Of a DNA stretch of 64,000 nt, positions 2,617 to 64,000 are shown one piece after another; the first letter of the stretch is position 1, and the number at the start of each line of letters is the position of its first letter. Below the pieces are notes generated by a model. It searched no databases. It saw only the letters and a list, made by a program, of their open reading frames with translations, and had not been told where the DNA came from. A program made the position numbers and the translations under genes. The DNA lies in assembly GCF_021869535.1 (NCBI RefSeq), contig NW_026262679.1:4154001-4218000 (forward strand), in the 5' to 3' direction. This DNA comes from Mytilus californianus. Its lineage: Eukaryota.

Positions 2617-3270
2617 CAGGTTGGGAACAAACCCTCTATATGGTGTTTATACCTGTATAGAGGGATTACCCTTCTATAAAGGGATAAAATTATCCCTCTA
2701 TAGAGATATATATTTGTTTTATATAGACTGGATTTTAAACAAAACATGGCAATTGCGCATTTGCTACTTATTATGGTTGTAACCTGTAACATTTGATGCA
2801 CCAATTGCTGTACTTAATTTAATATGCACATGTCTAGTTTACTGCTAAACTGACCATCTTTGTATACAACTATTGTTCATCATAAAGCTGTGATGATTAG
2901 GTAAATTCCACTCAGTTATGCCTCAATGAACAGATTTCTATTGTTAGAATTGACATAAAATTTAAAGGTCAAATGTCGCTATTGTTGTTGATCAGGTGTT
3001 CATATAGGTACACAATAGATTGCAAGTTCTGTCACTTTAGCAGAAAACTGAGCATCCCAATTTTAGTAAAGTGCAATAATTGATACATATTCTGCACTAG
3101 ATTACAGTCAATATACATTTAACTAGAAAATGCCATTTTGTCATCTTCCTGCTTTAAATCCAGTCTAAAACAAATATATCCCTCTGTAGAGAGAAAATTT
3201 TATCCCTCTATAGAAGGATAATCCCTCTATACAGGTATAAACACCATATAGAGGGTTTGTTCCCAACCTG
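2617..3270. mobile_element. MITE with about 130-bp TIRs and 5-bp TSD (TTTCT)
   Basis: Left CAGGTTGGGAACAAACCCTCTATATGGTGTTTATACCTGTATAGAGGGATTA is the exact reverse complement of the right end (..GTTTGTTCCCAACCTG, 3270). TTTCT occurs at 2612-2616 and 3271-3275. Confidence 0.88.
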
Positions 3271-3830
3271 TTTCTGGTAGAAAAACCTGTATGTTACGAT
3301 AAAGAATGTAATGTCACCGGCGCTGCATATGTACTTTTTTTGGAATTATTGCCCTTTGTTTTGGAATCCGCTCCATGTCATACATTTACTGAAATCGAAA
3401 TCTTGAGCCAACCATGGCGAAAGTTGAACTCTTTTTATATATCTGACATTCACTTTAGTGTTATACATCAGTACAGAGGATGCGACTTTGGTTTGTTTTC
3501 CTGTTTTTGATCCATATCTTCAAAGAATATGCGCGTTGACCCACAACCCATAAAAACATTTATTAGAACGCTTACTAACTACACGAACAATTGTTTTTCA
3601 TTATAACATACACTAAGGCAATAAATTGTGAACGTCAATTAATATTCATTTTAAATGTTTATTGTGATTTCTACAAGTATCCTCGCTCGTTAAAATTTTA
3701 TGTATGGAAAGGTATTTATGTCATAAAATTGTCTAGCATACATATTTTTCAGAATTGTAAAAGTGATTATCTTTGTATTTTTAGTTTTTTACCATCATCC
3801 TGTAGTCAATGTAGATGTGTTAAAGTTTAA

Positions 3831-4406
3831 GGTTCATGTGGACCCTATGGCTAAAATGGCTGCGTTTTCACCTCAAAATTTACTCTGAGTGCAGACAAAC
3901 CTATGCATCTCAAAAAGTTTTAAGGCATAGTATGTCCTAGATAAATAAAATTCAAGTTATGCATTGTATGTTTTAGAAAATTTAAAACTTAACTGAATTA
4001 TGCAGTGCACTTTTTTTCGTCCCTGCAGGAGGTGATAAAGTTAACGAACAGTTGAATTTCACTTGATATGGTCCACTCAGTTTCAGTTTAAATCACCAAT
4101 TATTGTAAGGTATCTATTGTCCATGTAAATCAATACAGTTCACTTCAATCATTACCTGTGGGGAAGTTCTCAAACCTCTTTCGCAACTTAGTTTATTTTG
4201 GCACATTCTGGAGGAATGAAAAAAAAGTGCACTGCAAAAATTCCTGTTAAAGTTTTTATTTTCTAAAACATTTTATATATTTGAATTTTATTTATCTAGG
4301 GCATGCTATGCCTTAAAACTTTACCAGATACACTGATTTGCCTGTACTCAAGAGTAAATTTTGAGGTGAAAATGCAGCCATTTTAGCCAAAGGGTTCACA
4401 TAAACC
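3831..4406. mobile_element. Kolobok-like non-autonomous element (TTAA TSD, GG...CC termini, about 190-bp imperfect TIRs)
   Basis: TTAA|GGTTCATGTGGACCCTATGGCTAAAATGGCTGC... and ...GCAGCCATTTTAGCCAAAGGGTTCACATAAACC|TTAA. The inverted arms remain alignable for about 190 bp. Confidence 0.85.
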
Positions 4407-4619
4407 TTAAATAATCTACTTGGTTATCTGTTACGCACGAGGTATTTATAGTTTTTCTATGGAAAGGCAAAAACTGAAGGCTTTAGTTGGGAAGATAGGA
4501 ACACTGAGTATTTCAAAGAAAGAATCGGCCTCGCCGCACAAACAATGGCATGATCATACCACGCGATCAAAATATAATCAAATTATACTCTCGAAAACAA
4601 AGAATAGACGAGTGCAAAC

Positions 4620-4699
4620 CTCTGTTCTTGTTCTTGGTCTTGTTCTTGTTGCATATTATCATTTGGCGATTGGGATCCGTCGTTGTCGTTTTCATACAT
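4620..4699 (-). CDS. MYEF2/HNRNPM: hnRNP M / MYEF2-like, first coding exon
   Basis: ATG at 4699 gives MYENDNDGSQSPNDNMQQEQDQEQEQ followed by AG|GTTTGC (phase-2 donor). This joins the phase-2 acceptor at 1552 to make AGA (Arg) and keeps the frame open into the RS/RRM exon. Confidence 0.8.
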
Positions 4700-4757
4700 C
4701 TTGCAGATTTCTTTCTGTTTTGTTGCAGATATTAGCAAACGGGAAATATTTCTTCGA

Positions 4758-4774
4758 ATGGCGTCTGTCACGTG
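4758..4774. promoter_or_regulatory. Putative promoter-proximal motifs of the hnRNP M-like gene (E-box CACGTG; YY1-like ATGGCG)
   Basis: GTCACGTGG at 4767-4775 and ATGGCG at 4758-4763, 60-75 nt upstream of the start codon. Motif match only. Confidence 0.3.
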
Positions 4775-5019
4775 GTTTATAAAATTTTACCAATTGACAA
4801 ACGAAACGAATTTAAAGGAGTAAGACAAATAATATCAATTGACACGGACTGTTGCAATAATTATTGACTATCAAATACCATTATTTTTTTCCGATTTTTC
4901 AAAAAAAAATTAACATCTAAATATAGTATAAAAATTTAAAAAAAACTAAAAAAAATCGGTAGATTTTATGTCATTTCAATCAGGCCGGCCAAACTCATGG
5001 GCTCGTATTGATAATTCTT

Positions 5020-20538: not shown

Positions 20539-20756
20539 CTACAATCTATCAAGTTTGAATGATTCTTCAGTAGCTGGATCAGTTAAATTATTTGGATCCG
20601 ATAGCAACTGCAATTCTTGTAAATCTAATGGGTCAAGTCCAGCTTTTAAAGCTTCAACAGAAGGAAAAAGGTCCGTATCAAATCCATCGGGCATTCCAGT
20701 TATAGCATTTCCTAATTCTTTAGCAAAATCTTGTTGTTTCGTATAATCATCAGCAC
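20539..20756 (-). CDS. CRTC: CRTC (CREB-regulated transcription coactivator) terminal coding exon, TORC C-terminal activation domain
   Basis: Acceptor TTTTATGTTTTAG|GT at 20756 (phase 1). Encodes (G)ADDYTKQQDFAKELGNAITGMPDGFDTDLFPSVEALKAGLDPLDLQELQLLSDPNNLTDPATEESFKLDRL*, matching the CRTC C-terminus (..LDPLD...L.ML.DP...DPA.ED.FR.DRL*). Stop TAG at 20541-20539. Confidence 0.95.
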
Positions 20757-27941: not shown

Positions 27942-30696
27942 CTGAAAAAGAAAAAAAAATCAATCAAGTTCAACAAATAACAGTGAAACCTGTCTAAACT
28001 GAACCACTTAAAGTTTGTTATAATTAGACGGGTGGTAAGTATATGCAGGTGAATTTATTAAAGAATAATCACTGTACTCCCAAGATTGATTTCAGACAGA
28101 TATCTGTTTACACAAGTTAGACTGTATATCAAAGCATTCTATTTCTACAATGGAAGGAATTATTTCATTTCTTTGTCACTATTTTGGCATTGCAGTCAAA
28201 AGTAAGATGCTGTATAAGTTTCACAAAGTCTGTCAGGGGGTTCAGGAGCAGTAGCGGATACAAAAGCGGGAAGGAGGGACGAACAGAAAAATGGATGCAC
28301 TTCTTCATCACTATATCCCTCCCACTACAGAAATCAGGGTATAAAACTTTCTTATGACTTGGGTTCTATGCTATATTGATGATGATGGAGATAGTTGTTA
28401 ATGTTACACAGCAATATAAATCACATTATACAATTAACTATGGACATTCTAAAACAATAGTAGAAAAGCGTTAAAATGAATTAAATATAATAAAATGAAA
28501 CATTCCAAGAACAATTCCAACTGTGTGTTATGAGATATGTAATGTATCATAACAGGTACTATTTTCAGGTATATATAAGGAATAAATCTCAATCGTACTC
28601 CAACATTTCAAACTTCCACCTACATTAACATTTATATCAGGTCAGTATTACTTGGTAACCTTTTGTGTGACATTTTATGAACTACAATAATGATTTATCA
28701 TATCATCATAATTTTACTTGAATATATACATATATCACTTTCCAAAAATAGCTTCATTTACATTGTTACTGTTCCATTAAGACAGAACCTATATGTAGTA
28801 ACAAAACAAACACATATGGCTTCAAGGCAATAATTACTTCTAAATAGAGCATTTAATATTGAAACTTAATTGTATCATTTATCTGTTTTGTTTCAGGCTA
28901 AAAAGAATAAATTATCTAGCATTAAGGTATTATTATCAAGATTAATCAAATCTAAGAGATCAAGCGATCACAATGTTCAATCGTCACTTTAGTTGAAGGT
29001 CAGTTACAATATTTTTTTTTTGTCTAGATCATTCTCTGATGAACAGAGGTAATTGATTGAAATGAGATTGACAAATCAAACACACCTACAACATGATTGT
29101 GAATTTGCTTATAATTGACACTAGATTTTAAATCTAGATTGAAAGAATATTTTAAAATTGACTTGTAAAACTGGTTTCACAATGTTTATATACTGTCCCT
29201 ACTTTTGATTGACTCTCTGCTTAACAATTGACTATTAATAAAGCATTAATGAAGGTAGTACCTTAGCTAATAACTATTCCATGGTTCAGCTTAGCTGTGG
29301 AATTGTAGCTCTTAGGTCCTTAGGACCACTTGACAAATTGTCAAAAAATATCATAAGGATGTAACAGCTAGTTCCACAGCTAGGTTCAGCTAGCAAGCAA
29401 GCTAACCAAAGATACTACTTTTACCTACACACTCATCCATGTGTTGTAAAAATCTGTTTCATTTAAATTTCAAATAATAAATGTGGATAGTGTCCACATG
29501 TGGACACAGATGATGCCCCCGCTTGCATATCATATAGTTATAAAGGGACATAACTGAAGAACGGTAAAAGTGACGCTACCCAAATTTGAACTTGATCTGA
29601 CTTTTGTGGTAATAAGCATTGTGTGGAAGTCTCATAACATTTGGTTAAGGCTAACTTAAGTAGAGAACAGAAACTAAAATTCAGCAATTTTCTATTTGTA
29701 AACATGCATAACTCTAGAACGGTTGTGTATAAGTATTAAGACAAACTTAAGCTAGAGAACGGAAACGAAAAATTCAGCAATTTTCATGTTTATAAAGGGA
29801 CATAACTCAAGAATGGTAAAAGTGTTGCCACCAAATTTCGTACTTAATCTGTATTATGTAGTAATAAGCATTGTGTATAAGTTTCATAACATTTGGTTTA
29901 GGCAAACTCAAGTTAGAGAACGGAAACCAATTTTGGGACGTACAGACGGACGTATGTACAGACGGACAAGGGTAAAACTTAATGCCCCCACCGCTATGGT
30001 GGGGGCATAAAAATGTGTTGTTACAACACTGTAATAAGTAAAGGAGGGTTGAGGGCTCACAAAATAGGTTAACCCCGCCATATTCTTCATGACCAACGTT
30101 TAGTAAAGACGAGTATGCATAATCTAGTGGTTGCCGTTGGTTGCTGTGTTCCATATTTATTTTTTTGTTTGTAGTATATTAAAGCAAGCCATTGGTTTTC
30201 TTTTTTCAATTGTTTCAGATTTAATCATATTATTTATATAGCTTTTTTAAGCTTACTATTTAGTATGGGATTTGCTCATTGTTCAAGGCCGTAGTGACCT
30301 GCAATTTTTCTGTCCTTTGGTTTTATGGTTAGTTAATTAGTAATCATAACACTTCTCGTTGTTTTGTTTAACCTCAAAATTTAGCCACATTTTCCACATT
30401 TATACACCATCTCCTTTGTAAAATCTATTTCTTCTTTTCTATTTTAATAACATATGAATTAATAATCATGAAGATTGCATCATGATGTATTCTTGAATTG
30501 TGAAACCATATAAGTGTATAGAGGTTAATCTTTTTTTCACAATGAACTCATTAACATTTCATAAATTGGTTTCTGAGTCAAAAGGAATACATTTTAAACA
30601 ATTATTAAATAGAATATGTGCTTGATAATATACAGGTAAACTTTAACACCCTTATATTGCACAAAATTGAAAGACTCTTACGGTATTGTTACTTAC

Positions 30697-30906: not shown

Positions 30907-32389
30907 CTAAAAAAAAAGTAAAGAAATTTAAAATTCTATAAAAACAAAAGCTATGGTCTTGTTAAATACATTTTGACCATATTAAAATTTATAATGCATG
31001 TAATATAGAATCTTAGCATGGAATAACCAGACCTGTGAAATAACATTTGTTATTTTGACCACTTGCAGGTGAAGCATTATGATTGAAACAATGCCAAATT
31101 GTTTAATGTTTATGTTTTATAAGAAGTTAGCCCATGAGGACCATTAGTATTTCATGAAAGCTTTTTTGTAACTGCATTGCCTTTCATAGATGGATTTCGT
31201 CCTGAATATGCATGAAATATTTGCCACAGTATGTTAAGCAACCAACAATCAATCAATCATTCATAGATGGATTAGTTGTTGATGGTCAGAGGGCCTGTTT
31301 CGGTGTTAGAAACTTTTGACCATTACTAATATTCTGTTTAACTTTTAACTCGTTGCTCATTGTAGAAAGATCAATGGTGTTATTTCTAGTATTCATTTTT
31401 TGGATACAGTTCATTCTTTTATAAGTATAACCCATTTTTCTTGCTCTATTTTTTTGTGGATTTTTATCCATTGGCCTGAGATGTCACCATTATGAATATG
31501 CCATTGCCACTAAGTTGCATCATAAAATATAATGGTCTGCCTAAACTAATGAAGACTGTTTCTAATAAGTAGCTGTATCCTTATTAAGAATTTATAAACC
31601 TATCTAAGATAAAAAAAAAATCTGTTTTAATATAATCTGAACAAAATCTTCATTTCAAAGGTGTTAAAATGGTGACAGTTACGGTAATGAGAAATAGAAT
31701 ACACAGAAGTGATAAAGTTTGTTACTAGGATTCCTGAATATGTAAAAGTGTAAGATATGCAACTTTAGGGAATTTTCTATCTGACAGTAGTATTCATAAA
31801 AATTTCGTTAACACAACTCTTATATATATTGTTTTTTTATGTATGACACTGATGTAAGCAACAACACTTATTAATAGATCATGAGAACCCTCGTACCTAA
31901 TATTTTGTGTGAACAATAAACACTTCTGAACAACATATTTTTAAATCTGAAATATCTACAAGTAAAATAACAAAAATAAAGCATGCTTCAAAGAAACAAA
32001 TATATATATACAACATAAATAAGTGTTCCAGATAAAGATTGCATGATTTAAAGTCTGATCCACATACAAGAAATGTTTGACTTCAGCTGTCATGAACTAT
32101 TGAAATGATTACATTGAATCAGGATTCTGGTCATTGTTGTATATTTATTTCTGTAAAACTGTTCAGTAATGTCCTTAAAAAAATTCCATAAAACTGATGT
32201 TAACTAAAATCAGAACATTACATCTGGAGAAGACATTATTAAGTTGTAAAACTTGTGTCTCATCCATTTGTTTAGTTTCTGAACAATAAAATATGTTTAA
32301 ACTAAAAAAACGTGTACTATTTTTTCCAAATAATTCATAAAATCAATGAAGGGAGGCAGAGATTATCTGGAACACTATGAGTTACTAAC

Positions 32390-32605
32390 CTCGGTATCAT
32401 TTTGGTCACATGCAGTTACACAAACTTGTGGCACCCTAGACCCCTGCTGTATATGATTGGATGAAGGAGATGGGTGTGACTGAGATACTTGGGGGTTGGG
32501 GTGTTGGGAGGCTCCATGCCTCTGCTGCTGCTGAAGGTGGTACAATAATTGCTGCTGCCTAATGCGGGGATCCAGCGGCAGTTGTGTAGGGTCAGGGTTC
32601 ACAAC
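32390..32605 (-). CDS. CRTC: CRTC coding exon (Q/P-rich)
   Basis: TTGACCTTTAG|GTT at 32605 and GAG|GTTAGT at 32390, 216 nt, phase 0-0. Encodes VVNPDPTQLPLDPRIRQQQLLYHLQQQQRHG...RVPQVCVTACDQNDTE. Confidence 0.9.
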
Positions 32606-35865: not shown

Positions 35866-36193
35866 ACTGCCTGGTGGAGAGTGTGGCATTCTCATTTGAG
35901 GAGACTGAGGTCCACCACTCAACACAAGTGGACTAGGATGGCCACCTGGCCTTCGCCTTTGGTTGGGGCTCTGTTGTGTAGGACTACCAGGCTGAGGGCA
36001 CATACCCTGCATGTGAGCACTTGTGGGAGAAAGATTTCCCTGAGAACAGCCATAAGCTTCTTCAGCATCAATTGGTGTTGTAAGAGGTGACTGGAAATGG
36101 ACTACAGTTAAATCTGGCAATGAACCAGTATTACTGGTGATTGGAAGGTGAGTCATTTGTCCTATATGATTTTCTTCTTCTGTTGGATAAATG
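35866..36193 (-). CDS. CRTC: CRTC coding exon containing the GSLPDL regulatory motif
   Basis: CTGCTTTTAG|CATT at 36193 (phase 2) and AGT|GTAAGT at 35866, 328 nt. Encodes (N)IYPTEEENHIGQMTHLPITSNTGSLPDLTVVHFQSPLTTPIDAEE...PHSPPGS, matching vertebrate IFPS...NTGGSLPDLTN.HFP.PL.TP.D.EE. Confidence 0.95.
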
Positions 36194-36984
36194 CTAAAAG
36201 CAGAATAAAATTTTAAGGAAATTATCTACTTTTCACCAGAAAAAATAAATTTACAATTCATTAAAATCATGGCTTTACAAAATATTTTAAGTATAAATAT
36301 TGCTCTTCATGATCAAGTCATGAGAAAAAAACACACACAAAAAAGATACAACAATGTAAAAATATATTGTGTATGCACACCAGGAAATACATGTATCTTG
36401 TGGTCACCGGTCTCTCTTATTTCCTCGTCTGGCAAGTTCTAAATGTATTTGTTTGCTTATTTTTTCTTAGCCTCTGTGACATATTTACAAATGTTAAGAT
36501 CCTAACATTTTCAAACTGTTTACATATTATAATAAAATATAATATTACACAATTCTTTTCAATTTTCACCATCTTTTGTTGATTAGAGGTGATCTGCACT
36601 CGTGATTCATGTACTGTATGTACGTATGTATGCCCTCTGGCATTAAAAACTCTTAATTGCGTAAACATCAATCTTAAATCCTTCCAATGAGGAAACACAG
36701 TAATATTTATATCATATAAATTGTGGTCTTTGAAAGTTAATTCCAAATCCAAGGAGTGCATCTGTCTAAAAACTTCCACAATAGATTAACATTAAATCAT
36801 CCTCTACTTTGTAGGTAATAACATTACATTCCTTAGAGGATGATGACAAATTTACAGGCAAAAACACAATTTATGATCAAAGTTGTGTAAGAAGTAATAT
36901 TTCCTAGTTTTATCATTAATATTAACCAAATCAGATATAAAACATCTATAAGCACCAATCATAAACCACATTCTATTTTTAGAT

Positions 36985-43709: not shown

Positions 43710-43721
43710 CTTTCATATCCA
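43710..43721 (-). CDS. CRTC: Candidate 12-nt CRTC microexon
   Basis: TTTACTTTTTACTGAATTTGTTATGCAG|TGGATATGAAAG|GTAAGTCTG. Phase 1-1, frame-preserving (adds MDMK-V between ..HRR and LEVV). Confidence 0.6.
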
Positions 43722-46481: not shown

Positions 46482-46576
46482 TTCTTCTATGAGCTGGAGG
46501 TGTTGTAGGGCTGCCCATATGGTCCAAGTCTGAAGGCCCCATTGTACTGGTATGTATGGCAGAATCGGAATTTGTT
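46482..46576 (-). CDS. CRTC: CRTC coding exon with the RTNSDSA 14-3-3/SIK phosphosite
   Basis: TGTTTGTTTTGTAG|A at 46576 (phase 2) and A|GTATGT at 46482 (phase 1), 95 nt. Encodes (R)TNSDSAIHTSTMGPSDLDHMGSPTTPPAHRR, matching RTNSDSALH(Q/T)S of CRTC1/3. Confidence 0.95.
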
Positions 46577-60500: not shown

Positions 60501-62410
60501 CTGTATTAGGAATATATCAAAGGAAAAATCAATGATATATCATCATGGAATCTTCAGAAAAAGTAAAATAAAGACACAATAAATATTTAACTTAATCAAG
60601 ACAAGAAGTGCACCATTTTGCCTGTTACACAGCAACAGTGATGAATTTAAAAAAGGACCTTCCATCCATTGCTTCTACCATGGTTTGGTCCAATTTGCCC
60701 CATTAATTTAACAGATATGATGAAAATGAGAAAGGTCAATGATGCACAGATGGAACACTGGTGCAATTAGCTATGGCAAAATTACAATCCAAACCATTGG
60801 ATTATCTTAATCTGTATCAATTTTGATGTAAATCATCATGTTTTAATATATTTTACATCAGAAAACCAGAATGTATTGTAAATATATAACATACAACTAT
60901 TTCAATAACATCATCTTCACTATTTCAAACTAGATCAAACTTAATATTTGTAGAGCCTGAAGGGACATGTATATCAATATGTACAGTGAGAAAAAATAAC
61001 AATGGATGACTAAAGTTAACCTGCACTGAATACAGTATAGAAACTGTTAACATGAAAGTTAACCATCCAATACATCATGTACATGTGGAGGGTTGTATCA
61101 GGTCTATTTACTTTACACATTCTATTGTCCAGTCTTAAAGATACCAGAAATTGATACTTAAAATTAGCGTTTTAATATATGAACATGTATGAAATGTATC
61201 TTAGTTTATTAAAACAGACGTACAAATACATGACAGTTACATGTTCATGTGACTTATTTTACAAAGGTAAATTTAAATATAAATTTGTACAAAGATTCAT
61301 GATTAAGGGCAATGCATTTTCAGTAAAATAGTACTGTATTCCAACAAACCAACAAAAAGCATGTACATTTTGATAAGTCTGGAATCTGAATTTGAATCAA
61401 ACAAATTTATAGGCACTGTCATTTTTTTCTGATCATGAAGAAAAACAATCTTCTGTCGTGATGACCATTCTTTCAAATACAAAGCTACCATTGGATTCTA
61501 TACATGAATAGAGGTACACACTAAGTGATTCAGGTCTTATTGGTGTGGAGTGAATCATAGTCAGTCAGGGTAATTGCTGGTGATTACAGGTGATAACACT
61601 CTGATTTAACACCTGGCAATGGTATACAGAGACTCAGAGAGATATATTAGCGTGAATCACCTGCTATCCCCAGCATTCACAACACAACTGATTTTTACTG
61701 AATCCCATGGTGTGAATTGTGTATAAAGAGTAACTCAATTTTCAACAGTTAACATTTATAAGTTAATATTTTAATATGATCAAGCATTTCTCACAAATCA
61801 ACATATATAGCACTGAAGCTGAAGCTTTGGATGACTTGATCATGATACAGTAAACATTAGTACCAGCACGAGCGCTCTAATCTGATACATCCCTGCAGGT
61901 ACTTTTAAGCTGCATATAAACATCATTCCTACATGTATATGTACAAATTGCAGTATAATCACACAGAAAGGACTATTACATGGTATGAGGTATGAACTCC
62001 TTTGAACTTCAGAGTTGCTGCTTTTCTATAAACTCCTGTCATTAAGGCAGATTACTACATACCCTTATGTTCTTTCACAAAATTCATCAATGATAAATTT
62101 CAAAGTGAAGGTTCATTGGAAGATGCATATAGTTTAACATCAATTTTGGGGTGTTATTTAATTTGCTTACTTTTCAAAACAAGTTTAAGTTAAGTTATAA
62201 TCTATATCATTCTTGAATATACAAACAAGCAACCATACAATTTGTACTAAAAAGAATGTATAAAGTGAAAGTACATATCAAGAAGCAATAATTATCACTG
62301 AAAAATGGAAAGATGTTCATACCTCATGTTTTGTTAGTATGATGTTAGGATTATTTTGTAAGTAGTTTGAGTCAGGATAGCTTGAAAATGAAGCGAAACT
62401 TCAAACTCAC

Positions 62411-62446
62411 CGTGGAAGATTTGCACCATTTAGGTGTCTGAATAAT
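62411..62446 (-). CDS. CRTC: CRTC 36-nt coding exon immediately upstream of the RTNSDS exon
   Basis: CCTGCCATCCCCTTTTCAG|ATTATTCAGACACCTAAATGGTGCAAATCTTCCACG|GTGAGT. The phase 2-2 frame is open: (R)LFRHLNGANLP(R)TNSDS, similar to CRTC2 QLFRLPSALNRTSSDS and CRTC3 GFRLTSALNRTNSDS (recalled sequences). Confidence 0.75.
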
Positions 62447-64000
62447 CTGAAAAGGGGATGGCAGGTTTAAGGTCAAGGACAGAAGACTATTATGTTTCCC
62501 AGACAAAAATGGAAGATTACAGAAAAAAACTTTTAAATAAAAACCTCAATCATGTAGTGCAAAGATCTCTACTTTTTTTCCATTTTATAATATTCGAACT
62601 ATTTCTTTTTCACTGGTTTTGTATGTATATACATGTATATGCTTAATGCATACATTTCTTTTCTTTAATAGTAAACAATTTCAGTCAAAAAACCTGGTTT
62701 ATGTAATTAAAATGATTCATTGTTGACTGTTTTGATTTCTGTATCAAGACAAAAGGATGTTTAACAACATAAAAAGCTATGTTTACATTAACACTACATG
62801 TACTTGAGGACTAAAGAACTAAAATATTTGAACTAAAATTAAATAATAACTATACTATAACTGTTTGTTAAAAGCATGGACTATCTATGGATAAAAAAGG
62901 AGTGAAAAGACAAAAGATAAAATTAGCAAAATAAACAACATTAATTAAAATCATGAGTGACCACACAGCCAATTTTAAACTTTCAAAGGGAGATAATCTT
63001 CAAATGACAATGTACATGTTCTTCACAGTAACACATGATTACAGGTACTGGCTATCATTAAAATAAATTTTGTAAGTTACAGATACATGAATACCCAGGG
63101 CTTCACATTTTTCTATTGGTTGAAGGGTTCCAGATTGTCAATTTATCATTCTCATAAGTCTACCTTCCTTTGTTAAAATTCAATTTACATTTATGATGTC
63201 AATAAACTTTGTTTAGAAATTATGTAAAATATATGCACTAATAATAATTAGTCTATATGTAGTAGGATAGACACCCCATCCATTTATAATAATTTTACAT
63301 ACATTTTTACTAGACATCTACTAGACATCTTTATATCTGAATTAATAACAGTATCTGGACAATAAATAACCCTTGTTCTTTGTAAATTGTTTTGTTATAA
63401 ATTAGGCCGCAAGTCAAAATGCAAGTTTTCTCAATTGAATTGTTTCATATTTTTCATGTCGGGCCTTTTATAGCCGCCTATACCGTATGGGTTTTTCTCA
63501 TTGTTGAAGGCTGTACAATTGCCTATATAATTGCTTACATCCACTTCATTTGAACTTTGGTGGATAGTTGTCTAATTGGAAATTATACCACATCTCCTTA
63601 TTTTTGTCTTGAATAAAGGTAGGATTTTATTTTTTATAAGGCAAAGAAAACTCACATATCTGCAAGAAGAAAATTAAGTTCAGGTAAACAAAAAACATAA
63701 TAAAGGGGATATTTATATATGTCAATGTAAAAGATAATCTGTTGTAAAATAAATTGCCTAACAAAAGTGCACTTTTTCTAAGACTGTTCCCCTCGATCTC
63801 TGTCCTCAGTTTCTAGCTAGAAAACTGTTGAACCTTGACTAACTTTTACCAAAATCAAAATGTTTTGTTCATATCCAAGGCCAATTATCTTCCAAAGATT
63901 GCTAAAGATCTTAATTATAGCTCACAAGATAATAAGTTGTCCTGAATTAATTTTTCCCAAAATGCAGTTTACTGTGCACTATGACCTTGATCTTTGATAC

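Follow-up and report, generated by a model that had tools for sequence, protein, structure and literature searches.

In the CREB-regulated transcription coactivators (CRTC), site II is a target of SIK, MARK and AMPK and acts as the gatekeeper of binding to 14-3-3 (Sonntag et al. 2017, PMC5325614; PMC8057676), and the residues that precede its serine differ between the mammalian paralogues, which read SWRRTN-S151 in CRTC1, ALNRTS-S171 in CRTC2 and ALNRTN-S162 in CRTC3 (PMC8057676). This N-terminal flank helps to explain why the response to cAMP is weak for CRTC1 and strong for CRTC2/3 in mammals. The locus described here lies in a window of 64,000 nucleotides of genomic DNA from the mussel Mytilus californianus (contig NW_026262679.1, positions 4,154,001 to 4,218,000 of the forward strand) and raises the question of whether one invertebrate CRTC gene can choose between such contexts by splicing. 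A single gene that makes both of them by way of a small conserved exon would be a natural example, open to test, in which splicing sets how sensitive the cAMP/LKB1-SIK transcriptional switch is, and the presence of this cassette in molluscs and amphioxus suggests a route to the divergence of the vertebrate CRTC paralogues.

Identity of the gene

The Pfam profiles TORC_N, TORC_M and TORC_C (PF12884, PF12885 and PF12886) each have one match above the Pfam cut-off in the genome, and all three fall on the minus strand of the same contig, with the CREB-binding TORC_N 4.7 kb past the end of the window, TORC_M at window 36028-36195 and TORC_C at window 20542-20739. The annotated proteins XP_052098076.1 and XP_052098078.1 each carry all three domains and show the hallmarks of the CRTC/TORC family, that is, the domain order TORC_N-TORC_M-TORC_C and the site II motif R-T-N-S-D-S-A-(L/I)-H. 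Exons 1-4 were read from the flanking DNA (L003, in which a position equals the window position minus 62000). Mollusc CRTC proteins were found by a search with exon 1 followed by one with oyster CRTC, and full-length comparisons were made on public proteins; a sequence search of the PDB with the site region gave no match.

The cassette exon and its two products

The exon in question is an alternative cassette of 36 nt at window 62411..62446 on the minus strand, where the sequence from 62446 to 62411 reads ...ccatccccttttcag|ATTATTCAGACACCTAAATGGTGCAAATCTTCCACG|gtgagttt. Its 3' splice site (62447..62466, minus strand) is a pyrimidine-rich tract that ends in ...ccatccccttttcag and has 83% pyrimidines across the 18 nt preceding the AG, and its 5' splice site is GTGAGT (62405..62410, minus strand). 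The exon is entered and left in phase 2 and encodes, with its junction codons, R-LFRHLNGANLP-R. Downstream, across an intron of 15,834 nt, follows the constitutive exon at 46482..46576 (minus strand), which encodes TNSDSAIHTSTMGPSDLDHMGSPTTPPAHRR with the site II serine, the counterpart of S151 in CRTC1 and of S171 in CRTC2. It begins at 46576 (ttttgtag|AACAAATTCCGATTCT...), from where RTNSDSAIH is encoded, and Pfam TORC_M of XP_052098076.1 and XP_052098078.1 starts at the same Arg of RTNSDS. The upstream neighbour, exon 4, lies 4.6 kb away and past the end of the window (window-equivalent 67059-67120, G000:C99:4221059-4221120, minus strand), encodes TNCSPYGSAYLSPPPDTSWR and ends in phase 2 with ...TGG AGG AG|gtaagc.

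Because exon 4 ends in AG and both possible next exons begin with A, an Arg codon is completed at either junction and both products stay in frame; the last bases of the cassette, CG, likewise form an Arg codon with the A at 46576. Inclusion therefore gives SWRRLFRHLNGANLPRTNSDS (SWR-R-LFRHLNGANLP-R-TNSDS), and skipping gives SWRRTNSDS (SWR-R-TNSDS). With consensus splice sites and a frame that is kept when it is included and when it is skipped, the segment has the features of an alternative cassette. An earlier note made from the letters of the window had described a 36-nt phase 2-2 exon with consensus splice sites 15.8 kb from the RTNSDS exon and had read its inclusion junction as LFRHLNGANLP-R-TNSDSAIH, and the minus-strand sequence, with its strong acceptor and GTGAGT donor, agrees in each respect. 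It had also predicted that the upstream exon outside the window would end WR|R in phase 2, so that skipping would yield W-R-R-T-N-S and inclusion would place Leu at -5; the flanking DNA indeed contains such an exon end, and the included form reads L-P-R-T-N-S.

Any long intron offers open frames with splice-like edges, and the 20,482-nt interval between exon 4 and the RTNSDS exon holds 668 AG..GT segments of 9-150 nt that are open in phase 2-2, a number that gives the idea of a chance frame its only, prior, appeal. A filter that asked for a pyrimidine content of 75% or more ahead of the AG and for agreement with the donor consensus at 7 or more of 8 positions was passed only by the cassette and by a 27-nt version nested in it that uses the same donor. 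Across the 20.5 kb that separate the flanking CRTC exons, the cassette is the sole well-spliced candidate to preserve the frame. Given this uniqueness, the 100% match to annotated proteins and the orthologous exons that oyster, Pomacea and amphioxus carry in the same intron with the same phase, we assign no probability to a chance frame and treat the segment as an exon. The nested acceptor (ttattcag|ACACC), which would yield the 27-nt version encoding RHLNGANLPR (window 62411-62437, minus strand), is used by no annotated isoform.

The cassette is within the length range of microexons (up to 51 nt) and has a TGC at -17 to -15 in Mytilus, and we considered whether it might be a neural microexon of the SRRM4/eMIC type. 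The acceptors of the oyster and Pomacea cassettes have no TGC over their final ~22 nt, and with a UGC motif confined to Mytilus and not conserved, we set this idea aside.

Public annotation of the two forms

Both forms of the mussel protein are represented in RefSeq. Isoform X4 (XP_052098078.1) contains the cassette, with its residues 140-152 mapping at 100% identity to window 62448-62410, while isoform X2 (XP_052098076.1) skips it and reads SWRRTNSDS. These models contain the same exon and the same skipping event as described here. Equivalents exist in other Mytilus species: M. edulis, M. trossulus, M. coruscus and M. galloprovincialis each have the two forms in their annotation, and for the last of these they are found in RefSeq as well as in a second, independent annotation (VDI748xx). 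The exon is thus no new discovery, since the cassette and its alternative use are already public, and its practical value is modest for the same reason. Cassettes of this kind, short frame-preserving exons that rewrite the flank of a phosphorylation and 14-3-3 site, are known as well. The RefSeq models of M. californianus CRTC are automatic predictions that are silent on the site context, and full-text literature searches returned no published description of the cassette event or of a link between it and the difference of CRTC1 vs CRTC2/3. We therefore regard the cassette as annotated but uncharacterised, and its functional reading as the new element.

Conservation across molluscs and amphioxus

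Inclusion and skipping are both annotated in 14 genera, with examples among scallops, oysters, Dreissena, Mya, abalone (Haliotis), Pomacea, Patella, Physella, Octopus and amphioxus (Branchiostoma). In annotated proteins, the insert is RLFRHLNGPNLS in scallops, RMYRYLNGVSLS in Haliotis and Pomacea, RNYPYLNGATLS in Patella, RTQMIRNHDLP in oysters, ...YLYSGLSLS in heterobranch snails, RLYPHLNGVSLP in Octopus and SHLHPVLPGSAML in Branchiostoma, and it is longer and ends in HLS or HLA in Dreissena and Mya. Lottia has a Patella-like insert (RNYAYLNGTTLS), with the inclusion form only among the proteins returned, and among heterobranch snails both forms within one species were seen for Physella only. 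At the genomic level, the cassettes of oyster (33 nt), Pomacea (36 nt) and amphioxus (39 nt) lie in the same intron and share phase 2-2, their upstream exons end in TGG-(A/C)(G/A)(G/A)-AG|gt, and the exon end CG|gtgagt of the mussel cassette is shared by those of oyster and Pomacea. When the cassettes of Mytilus, oyster, Pomacea and amphioxus were aligned together with flanks of 100 nt, no intronic conservation was seen past the splice sites.

What is most uniform in these inserts is their C-terminal end. In all mollusc inclusion forms checked (16/16), position -5 relative to the site II serine is Leu, -4 is one of the small non-basic residues Pro, Ser and Ala, and -3 is Arg; the amphioxus inclusion form has Met at -5 and Leu at -4. 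Besides these three site-flank positions, mollusc cassettes add 8-18 further residues, with Y/H-L-N-G at -10 to -7 in most of them. The skipped forms all read W-(R/K)-R, as do all listed CRTC proteins of arthropods, a brachiopod, annelids and a hemichordate and vertebrate CRTC1.

The CRTC proteins of arthropods (ticks, scorpions, spiders and a termite), a brachiopod, annelids and a hemichordate share the domain order and the WRRTNSDS site with the mussel protein but, unlike in the mussel, only the WRR form is present among those listed. Lingula and Owenia have the WR|R phase-2 intron of the mussel, yet a scan for splice candidates that recovered the known cassettes of oyster, Pomacea and amphioxus as a control detected no cassette-like candidate in the orthologous introns of these two animals (1.9 kb and 0.5 kb, respectively). 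Sought beyond mussels, as the earlier note had proposed, the exon and its skipping are found in the annotation of molluscs and amphioxus; the listed annelid proteins carry WRR only, and the Owenia intron holds no cassette-like candidate. We note that the exons flanking the WR|R intron of Lingula anatina are present twice as near-identical copies ca. 4.1 kb apart (L013:23929-25928 and 28037-30036), which the annotation assigns to two separate gene models; the duplication probably arose from the assembly or from haplotypes.

RNA evidence for inclusion and skipping

In oysters, both forms are present as intron-free, full-length open reading frames on contigs assembled from separate sequencing runs, with the expected junction sequences: contigs of ERR12311782 and SRR23703147 represent the skipped form, and a contig of SRR15204614 represents the included form. 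For M. californianus, we used read and contig depths over L003:380-6379 in 200-nt bins. Among the rows listed, 4 raw reads span the junction of exon 3 and exon 4, as do contigs in two runs. In run X21, the bin of the cassette has a depth of 0.58 in the orientation of the CRTC exons vs 0.05 in the opposite one, which would correspond to ca. 3 reads over the 36 nt of the cassette vs ca. 5 over exon 4 as estimated from depths rather than counts. In run X1, a contig over exons 3-4 stops 1 nt beyond exon 4, precisely where the two continuations diverge after their shared first A, and the extra depth on exon 4 and that of the cassette bin would both fit a contig with a depth of ca. 4.2 of 10.2. Conversely, a contig of run X6 extends 40 nt past exon 4 with an empty cassette bin, as would be expected from skipping, judging by depths and lengths. 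Taken as arithmetic on bin depths and not as a count, these values suggest an inclusion level of roughly 40-60% in M. californianus, and the depths per bin and the ends of the contigs agree with both forms being made.

These data bear on the idea that the cassette is effectively constitutive or effectively unused and that the respective other annotated form is mere splicing noise, which would be conceivable insofar as RefSeq XP models are computed predictions. Recurrence of both forms in 14 genera, in Mytilus from more than one annotation source, and as full-length assembled oyster transcripts from separate runs makes it very improbable, as do the contig of X6 that bypasses the cassette and the same-strand depth in the cassette bin of X1 and X21. 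The proposal that a single gene toggles by splicing between a CRTC1-like and a CRTC2/3-like context is, by contrast, supported by the annotation of M. californianus, other molluscs and amphioxus and by the oyster transcripts.

The intron upstream of the cassette also contains stretches with very deep RNA contigs on both strands (L003:1380-1780, 2780-3180 and 3580-4780, within window-equivalent 63380-66780 and partly inside the window at 63380-63780). Their summed depth reaches ca. 248,000 in one run, and they have many fixed differences and loose ends; this pattern is one of abundant dispersed repeats and not of CRTC transcription.

Site II context, kinases and 14-3-3 binding

Building on the observed exon, its phase, its two products and their conservation, we consider it highly probable that the conserved cassette of a single CRTC gene switches the context of site II, and on this reading splicing would set CRTC sensitivity. 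The cassette lies in a phase-2 intron whose position divides the Arg codon directly before R-T-N-S-D-S. Skipping it leaves S-W-R-R-T-N-S, a context identical to that of vertebrate CRTC1 S151, and inclusion adds 12 residues and creates N-L-P-R-T-N-S-D-S-A-I, a context of the CRTC2/3 type (A-L-N-R-T-S/N-S). How these two contexts might differ in function can be judged from the kinase side and from the side of 14-3-3 binding.

The AMPK family (AMPK/SIK/MARK) has the consensus LxB(S/T)xSxxxL (PMC8057676), and the included mussel site L-P-R-T-N-S-D-S-A-I matches it with Leu at -5, Arg at -3, Thr at -2 and Ile at +4; the skipped site has Trp at -5 and Arg at both -4 and -3. The suggestion that inclusion builds an optimal kinase site consequently holds at the level of sequence. 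As the main effect of the cassette it fares less well, because the published mutants point to 14-3-3 binding and cAMP sensitivity (PMC5325614) and Leu at -5 was dispensable where it was studied: its replacement by Ala at S273 of mouse CRTC3 had no effect on phosphorylation by SIK or MARK, and the AMPK-type motifs of CRTC proteins tolerate the loss of consensus residues (PMC6890249). Furthermore, the kinase side of the cassette effect may be small since the WRR context of CRTC1 is itself a good SIK site.

A predicted 14-3-3 site has Arg at -3 and/or -4, and both mussel forms would qualify, the skipped one with Arg at -4 and -3 and the included one with Arg at -3 only. Mutation of site II Arg to Ala lowers 14-3-3 binding, and Sonntag et al. 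infer that two Arg at -4/-3 raise the 14-3-3 affinity of CRTC1, which they regard as the likely reason why its induction by cAMP is weak (PMC5325614). In their exchange of W146RR of mouse CRTC1 and L157NR of CRTC3, the activity of CRTC3 dropped by more than 50% and that of CRTC1 rose modestly (PMC5325614). The residues swapped in this experiment (-5 to -3) are the same three positions that are exchanged by the mussel cassette. By analogy to the mouse proteins, 14-3-3 would hold the skipped WRR form more tightly, and cAMP or SIK inhibition would release it less readily, and the included LPR form would combine a consensus kinase site with weaker 14-3-3 retention as a more inducible coactivator. 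Splicing would thereby set 14-3-3 retention and the sensitivity to cAMP and SIK, with an effect on kinase efficiency possible but secondary. Our analysis suggests that 14-3-3 and cAMP sensitivity are a likelier effect of the cassette than kinase optimality alone.

The cassette could also be truly alternative but conserved for a reason unrelated to SIK and 14-3-3 tuning, such as a docking motif R-x-[FY]-[RP]-[HY]-L-N-G, spacing near the nuclear-localisation region or a CaMK/PKD-type LxRxxS site. Such a role would account for the conserved part of the insert extending well past -5, in most molluscs as far as the Y/H-L-N-G at -10 to -7, and would sit well with the tolerance of CRTC AMPK motifs to changes at -5 (PMC6890249). 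The most constant feature is nevertheless L-(P/S/A)-R, which oysters retain even though their insert (RTQMIRNHDLP) has diverged and which coincides with the three residues that matter in mammals (PMC5325614), so that we regard an unrelated role as unlikely, though deserving some weight, and continue with a switch of site II context as the preferred explanation.

Relation to the vertebrate CRTC paralogues

From -6 to +3 (SWRRTNSDSA), skipping gives the mussel a site II identical to that of mammalian CRTC1, and the included form resembles CRTC2/3 in that Leu occupies -5, the residue at -4 is non-basic and the single Arg stands at -3. Mammals encode the two contexts on separate paralogous genes, whereas the mussel makes both from one gene by splicing. 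The residue at -4 differs, being Asn in CRTC2/3 but Pro in the mussel and Pro, Ser or Ala in mollusc cassettes, and judging by the sequences the likeness of the cassette to vertebrate CRTC2/3 appears confined to the site context; their pattern FR....LNRT in the earlier note was compared over the -6 to +6 windows given in PMC8057676, and a protein search with residues 120-190 of amphioxus CRTC returned amphioxus proteins only.

These parallels touch on a question of gene history as well as of function. In isoform-to-paralogue subfunctionalisation, ancestral splice isoforms are partitioned among gene duplicates, and a single-copy CRTC gene of an invertebrate or a cephalochordate likewise makes two forms that resemble the two sets of vertebrate paralogues. 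It is conceivable, though we hold it only tentatively and lean against it, that the cassette is older than the divergence between molluscs and chordates, that the ancestral CRTC switched between WRR and L-x-R, and that CRTC1 fixed the skipped and CRTC2/3 the included state after the vertebrate genome duplications. The WRR form of such an ancestor would have been tightly held and weakly inducible by cAMP, and its L-x-R form readily released. If true, the specialisation of the vertebrate paralogues would preserve, in fixed form, a splicing switch still at work in molluscs and amphioxus. Since the cassette is missing from the two other lophotrochozoan genomes inspected, those of Lingula and Owenia, an independent origin in molluscs and chordates is possible.

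Other alternative splicing in CRTC

Several further observations concern alternative splicing elsewhere in the gene. Exon 3 starts with AGTGCATTTCAG|CAT (window-equivalent 68361-68372, L003:6361-6372, minus strand, outside the window) and thus has a second acceptor 12 nt downstream. Two M. coruscus proteins of 667 vs 663 aa differ by SAFQ, the four residues at the start of this exon, and the second acceptor looks like an annotated alternative 3' splice site. A candidate microexon of 12 nt with good splice-like edges lies in frame at window 43710-43721 (minus strand; ttatgcag|TGGATATGAAAG|gtaagt), but is absent from all 22 of the 22 Mytilus CRTC isoforms retrieved, which read PPAHRR-ILEVVGG throughout.

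Oyster CRTC isoforms of equal length (P0165 vs P0091 and P0323 vs P0324) differ in the site exon itself, with RTNSDSAIHTSTMGPA vs RSSSDSALHTSVLGTA, which suggests that it exists there as two mutually exclusive copies; the Mytilus window has one copy only, and no second one was found in it. Finally, a Gln/Pro-rich exon of 76 residues (window 32378-32605, minus strand) is part of isoform X2 (655 aa) but not of isoform X4 (595 aa) and is a second alternative exon of mussel CRTC.
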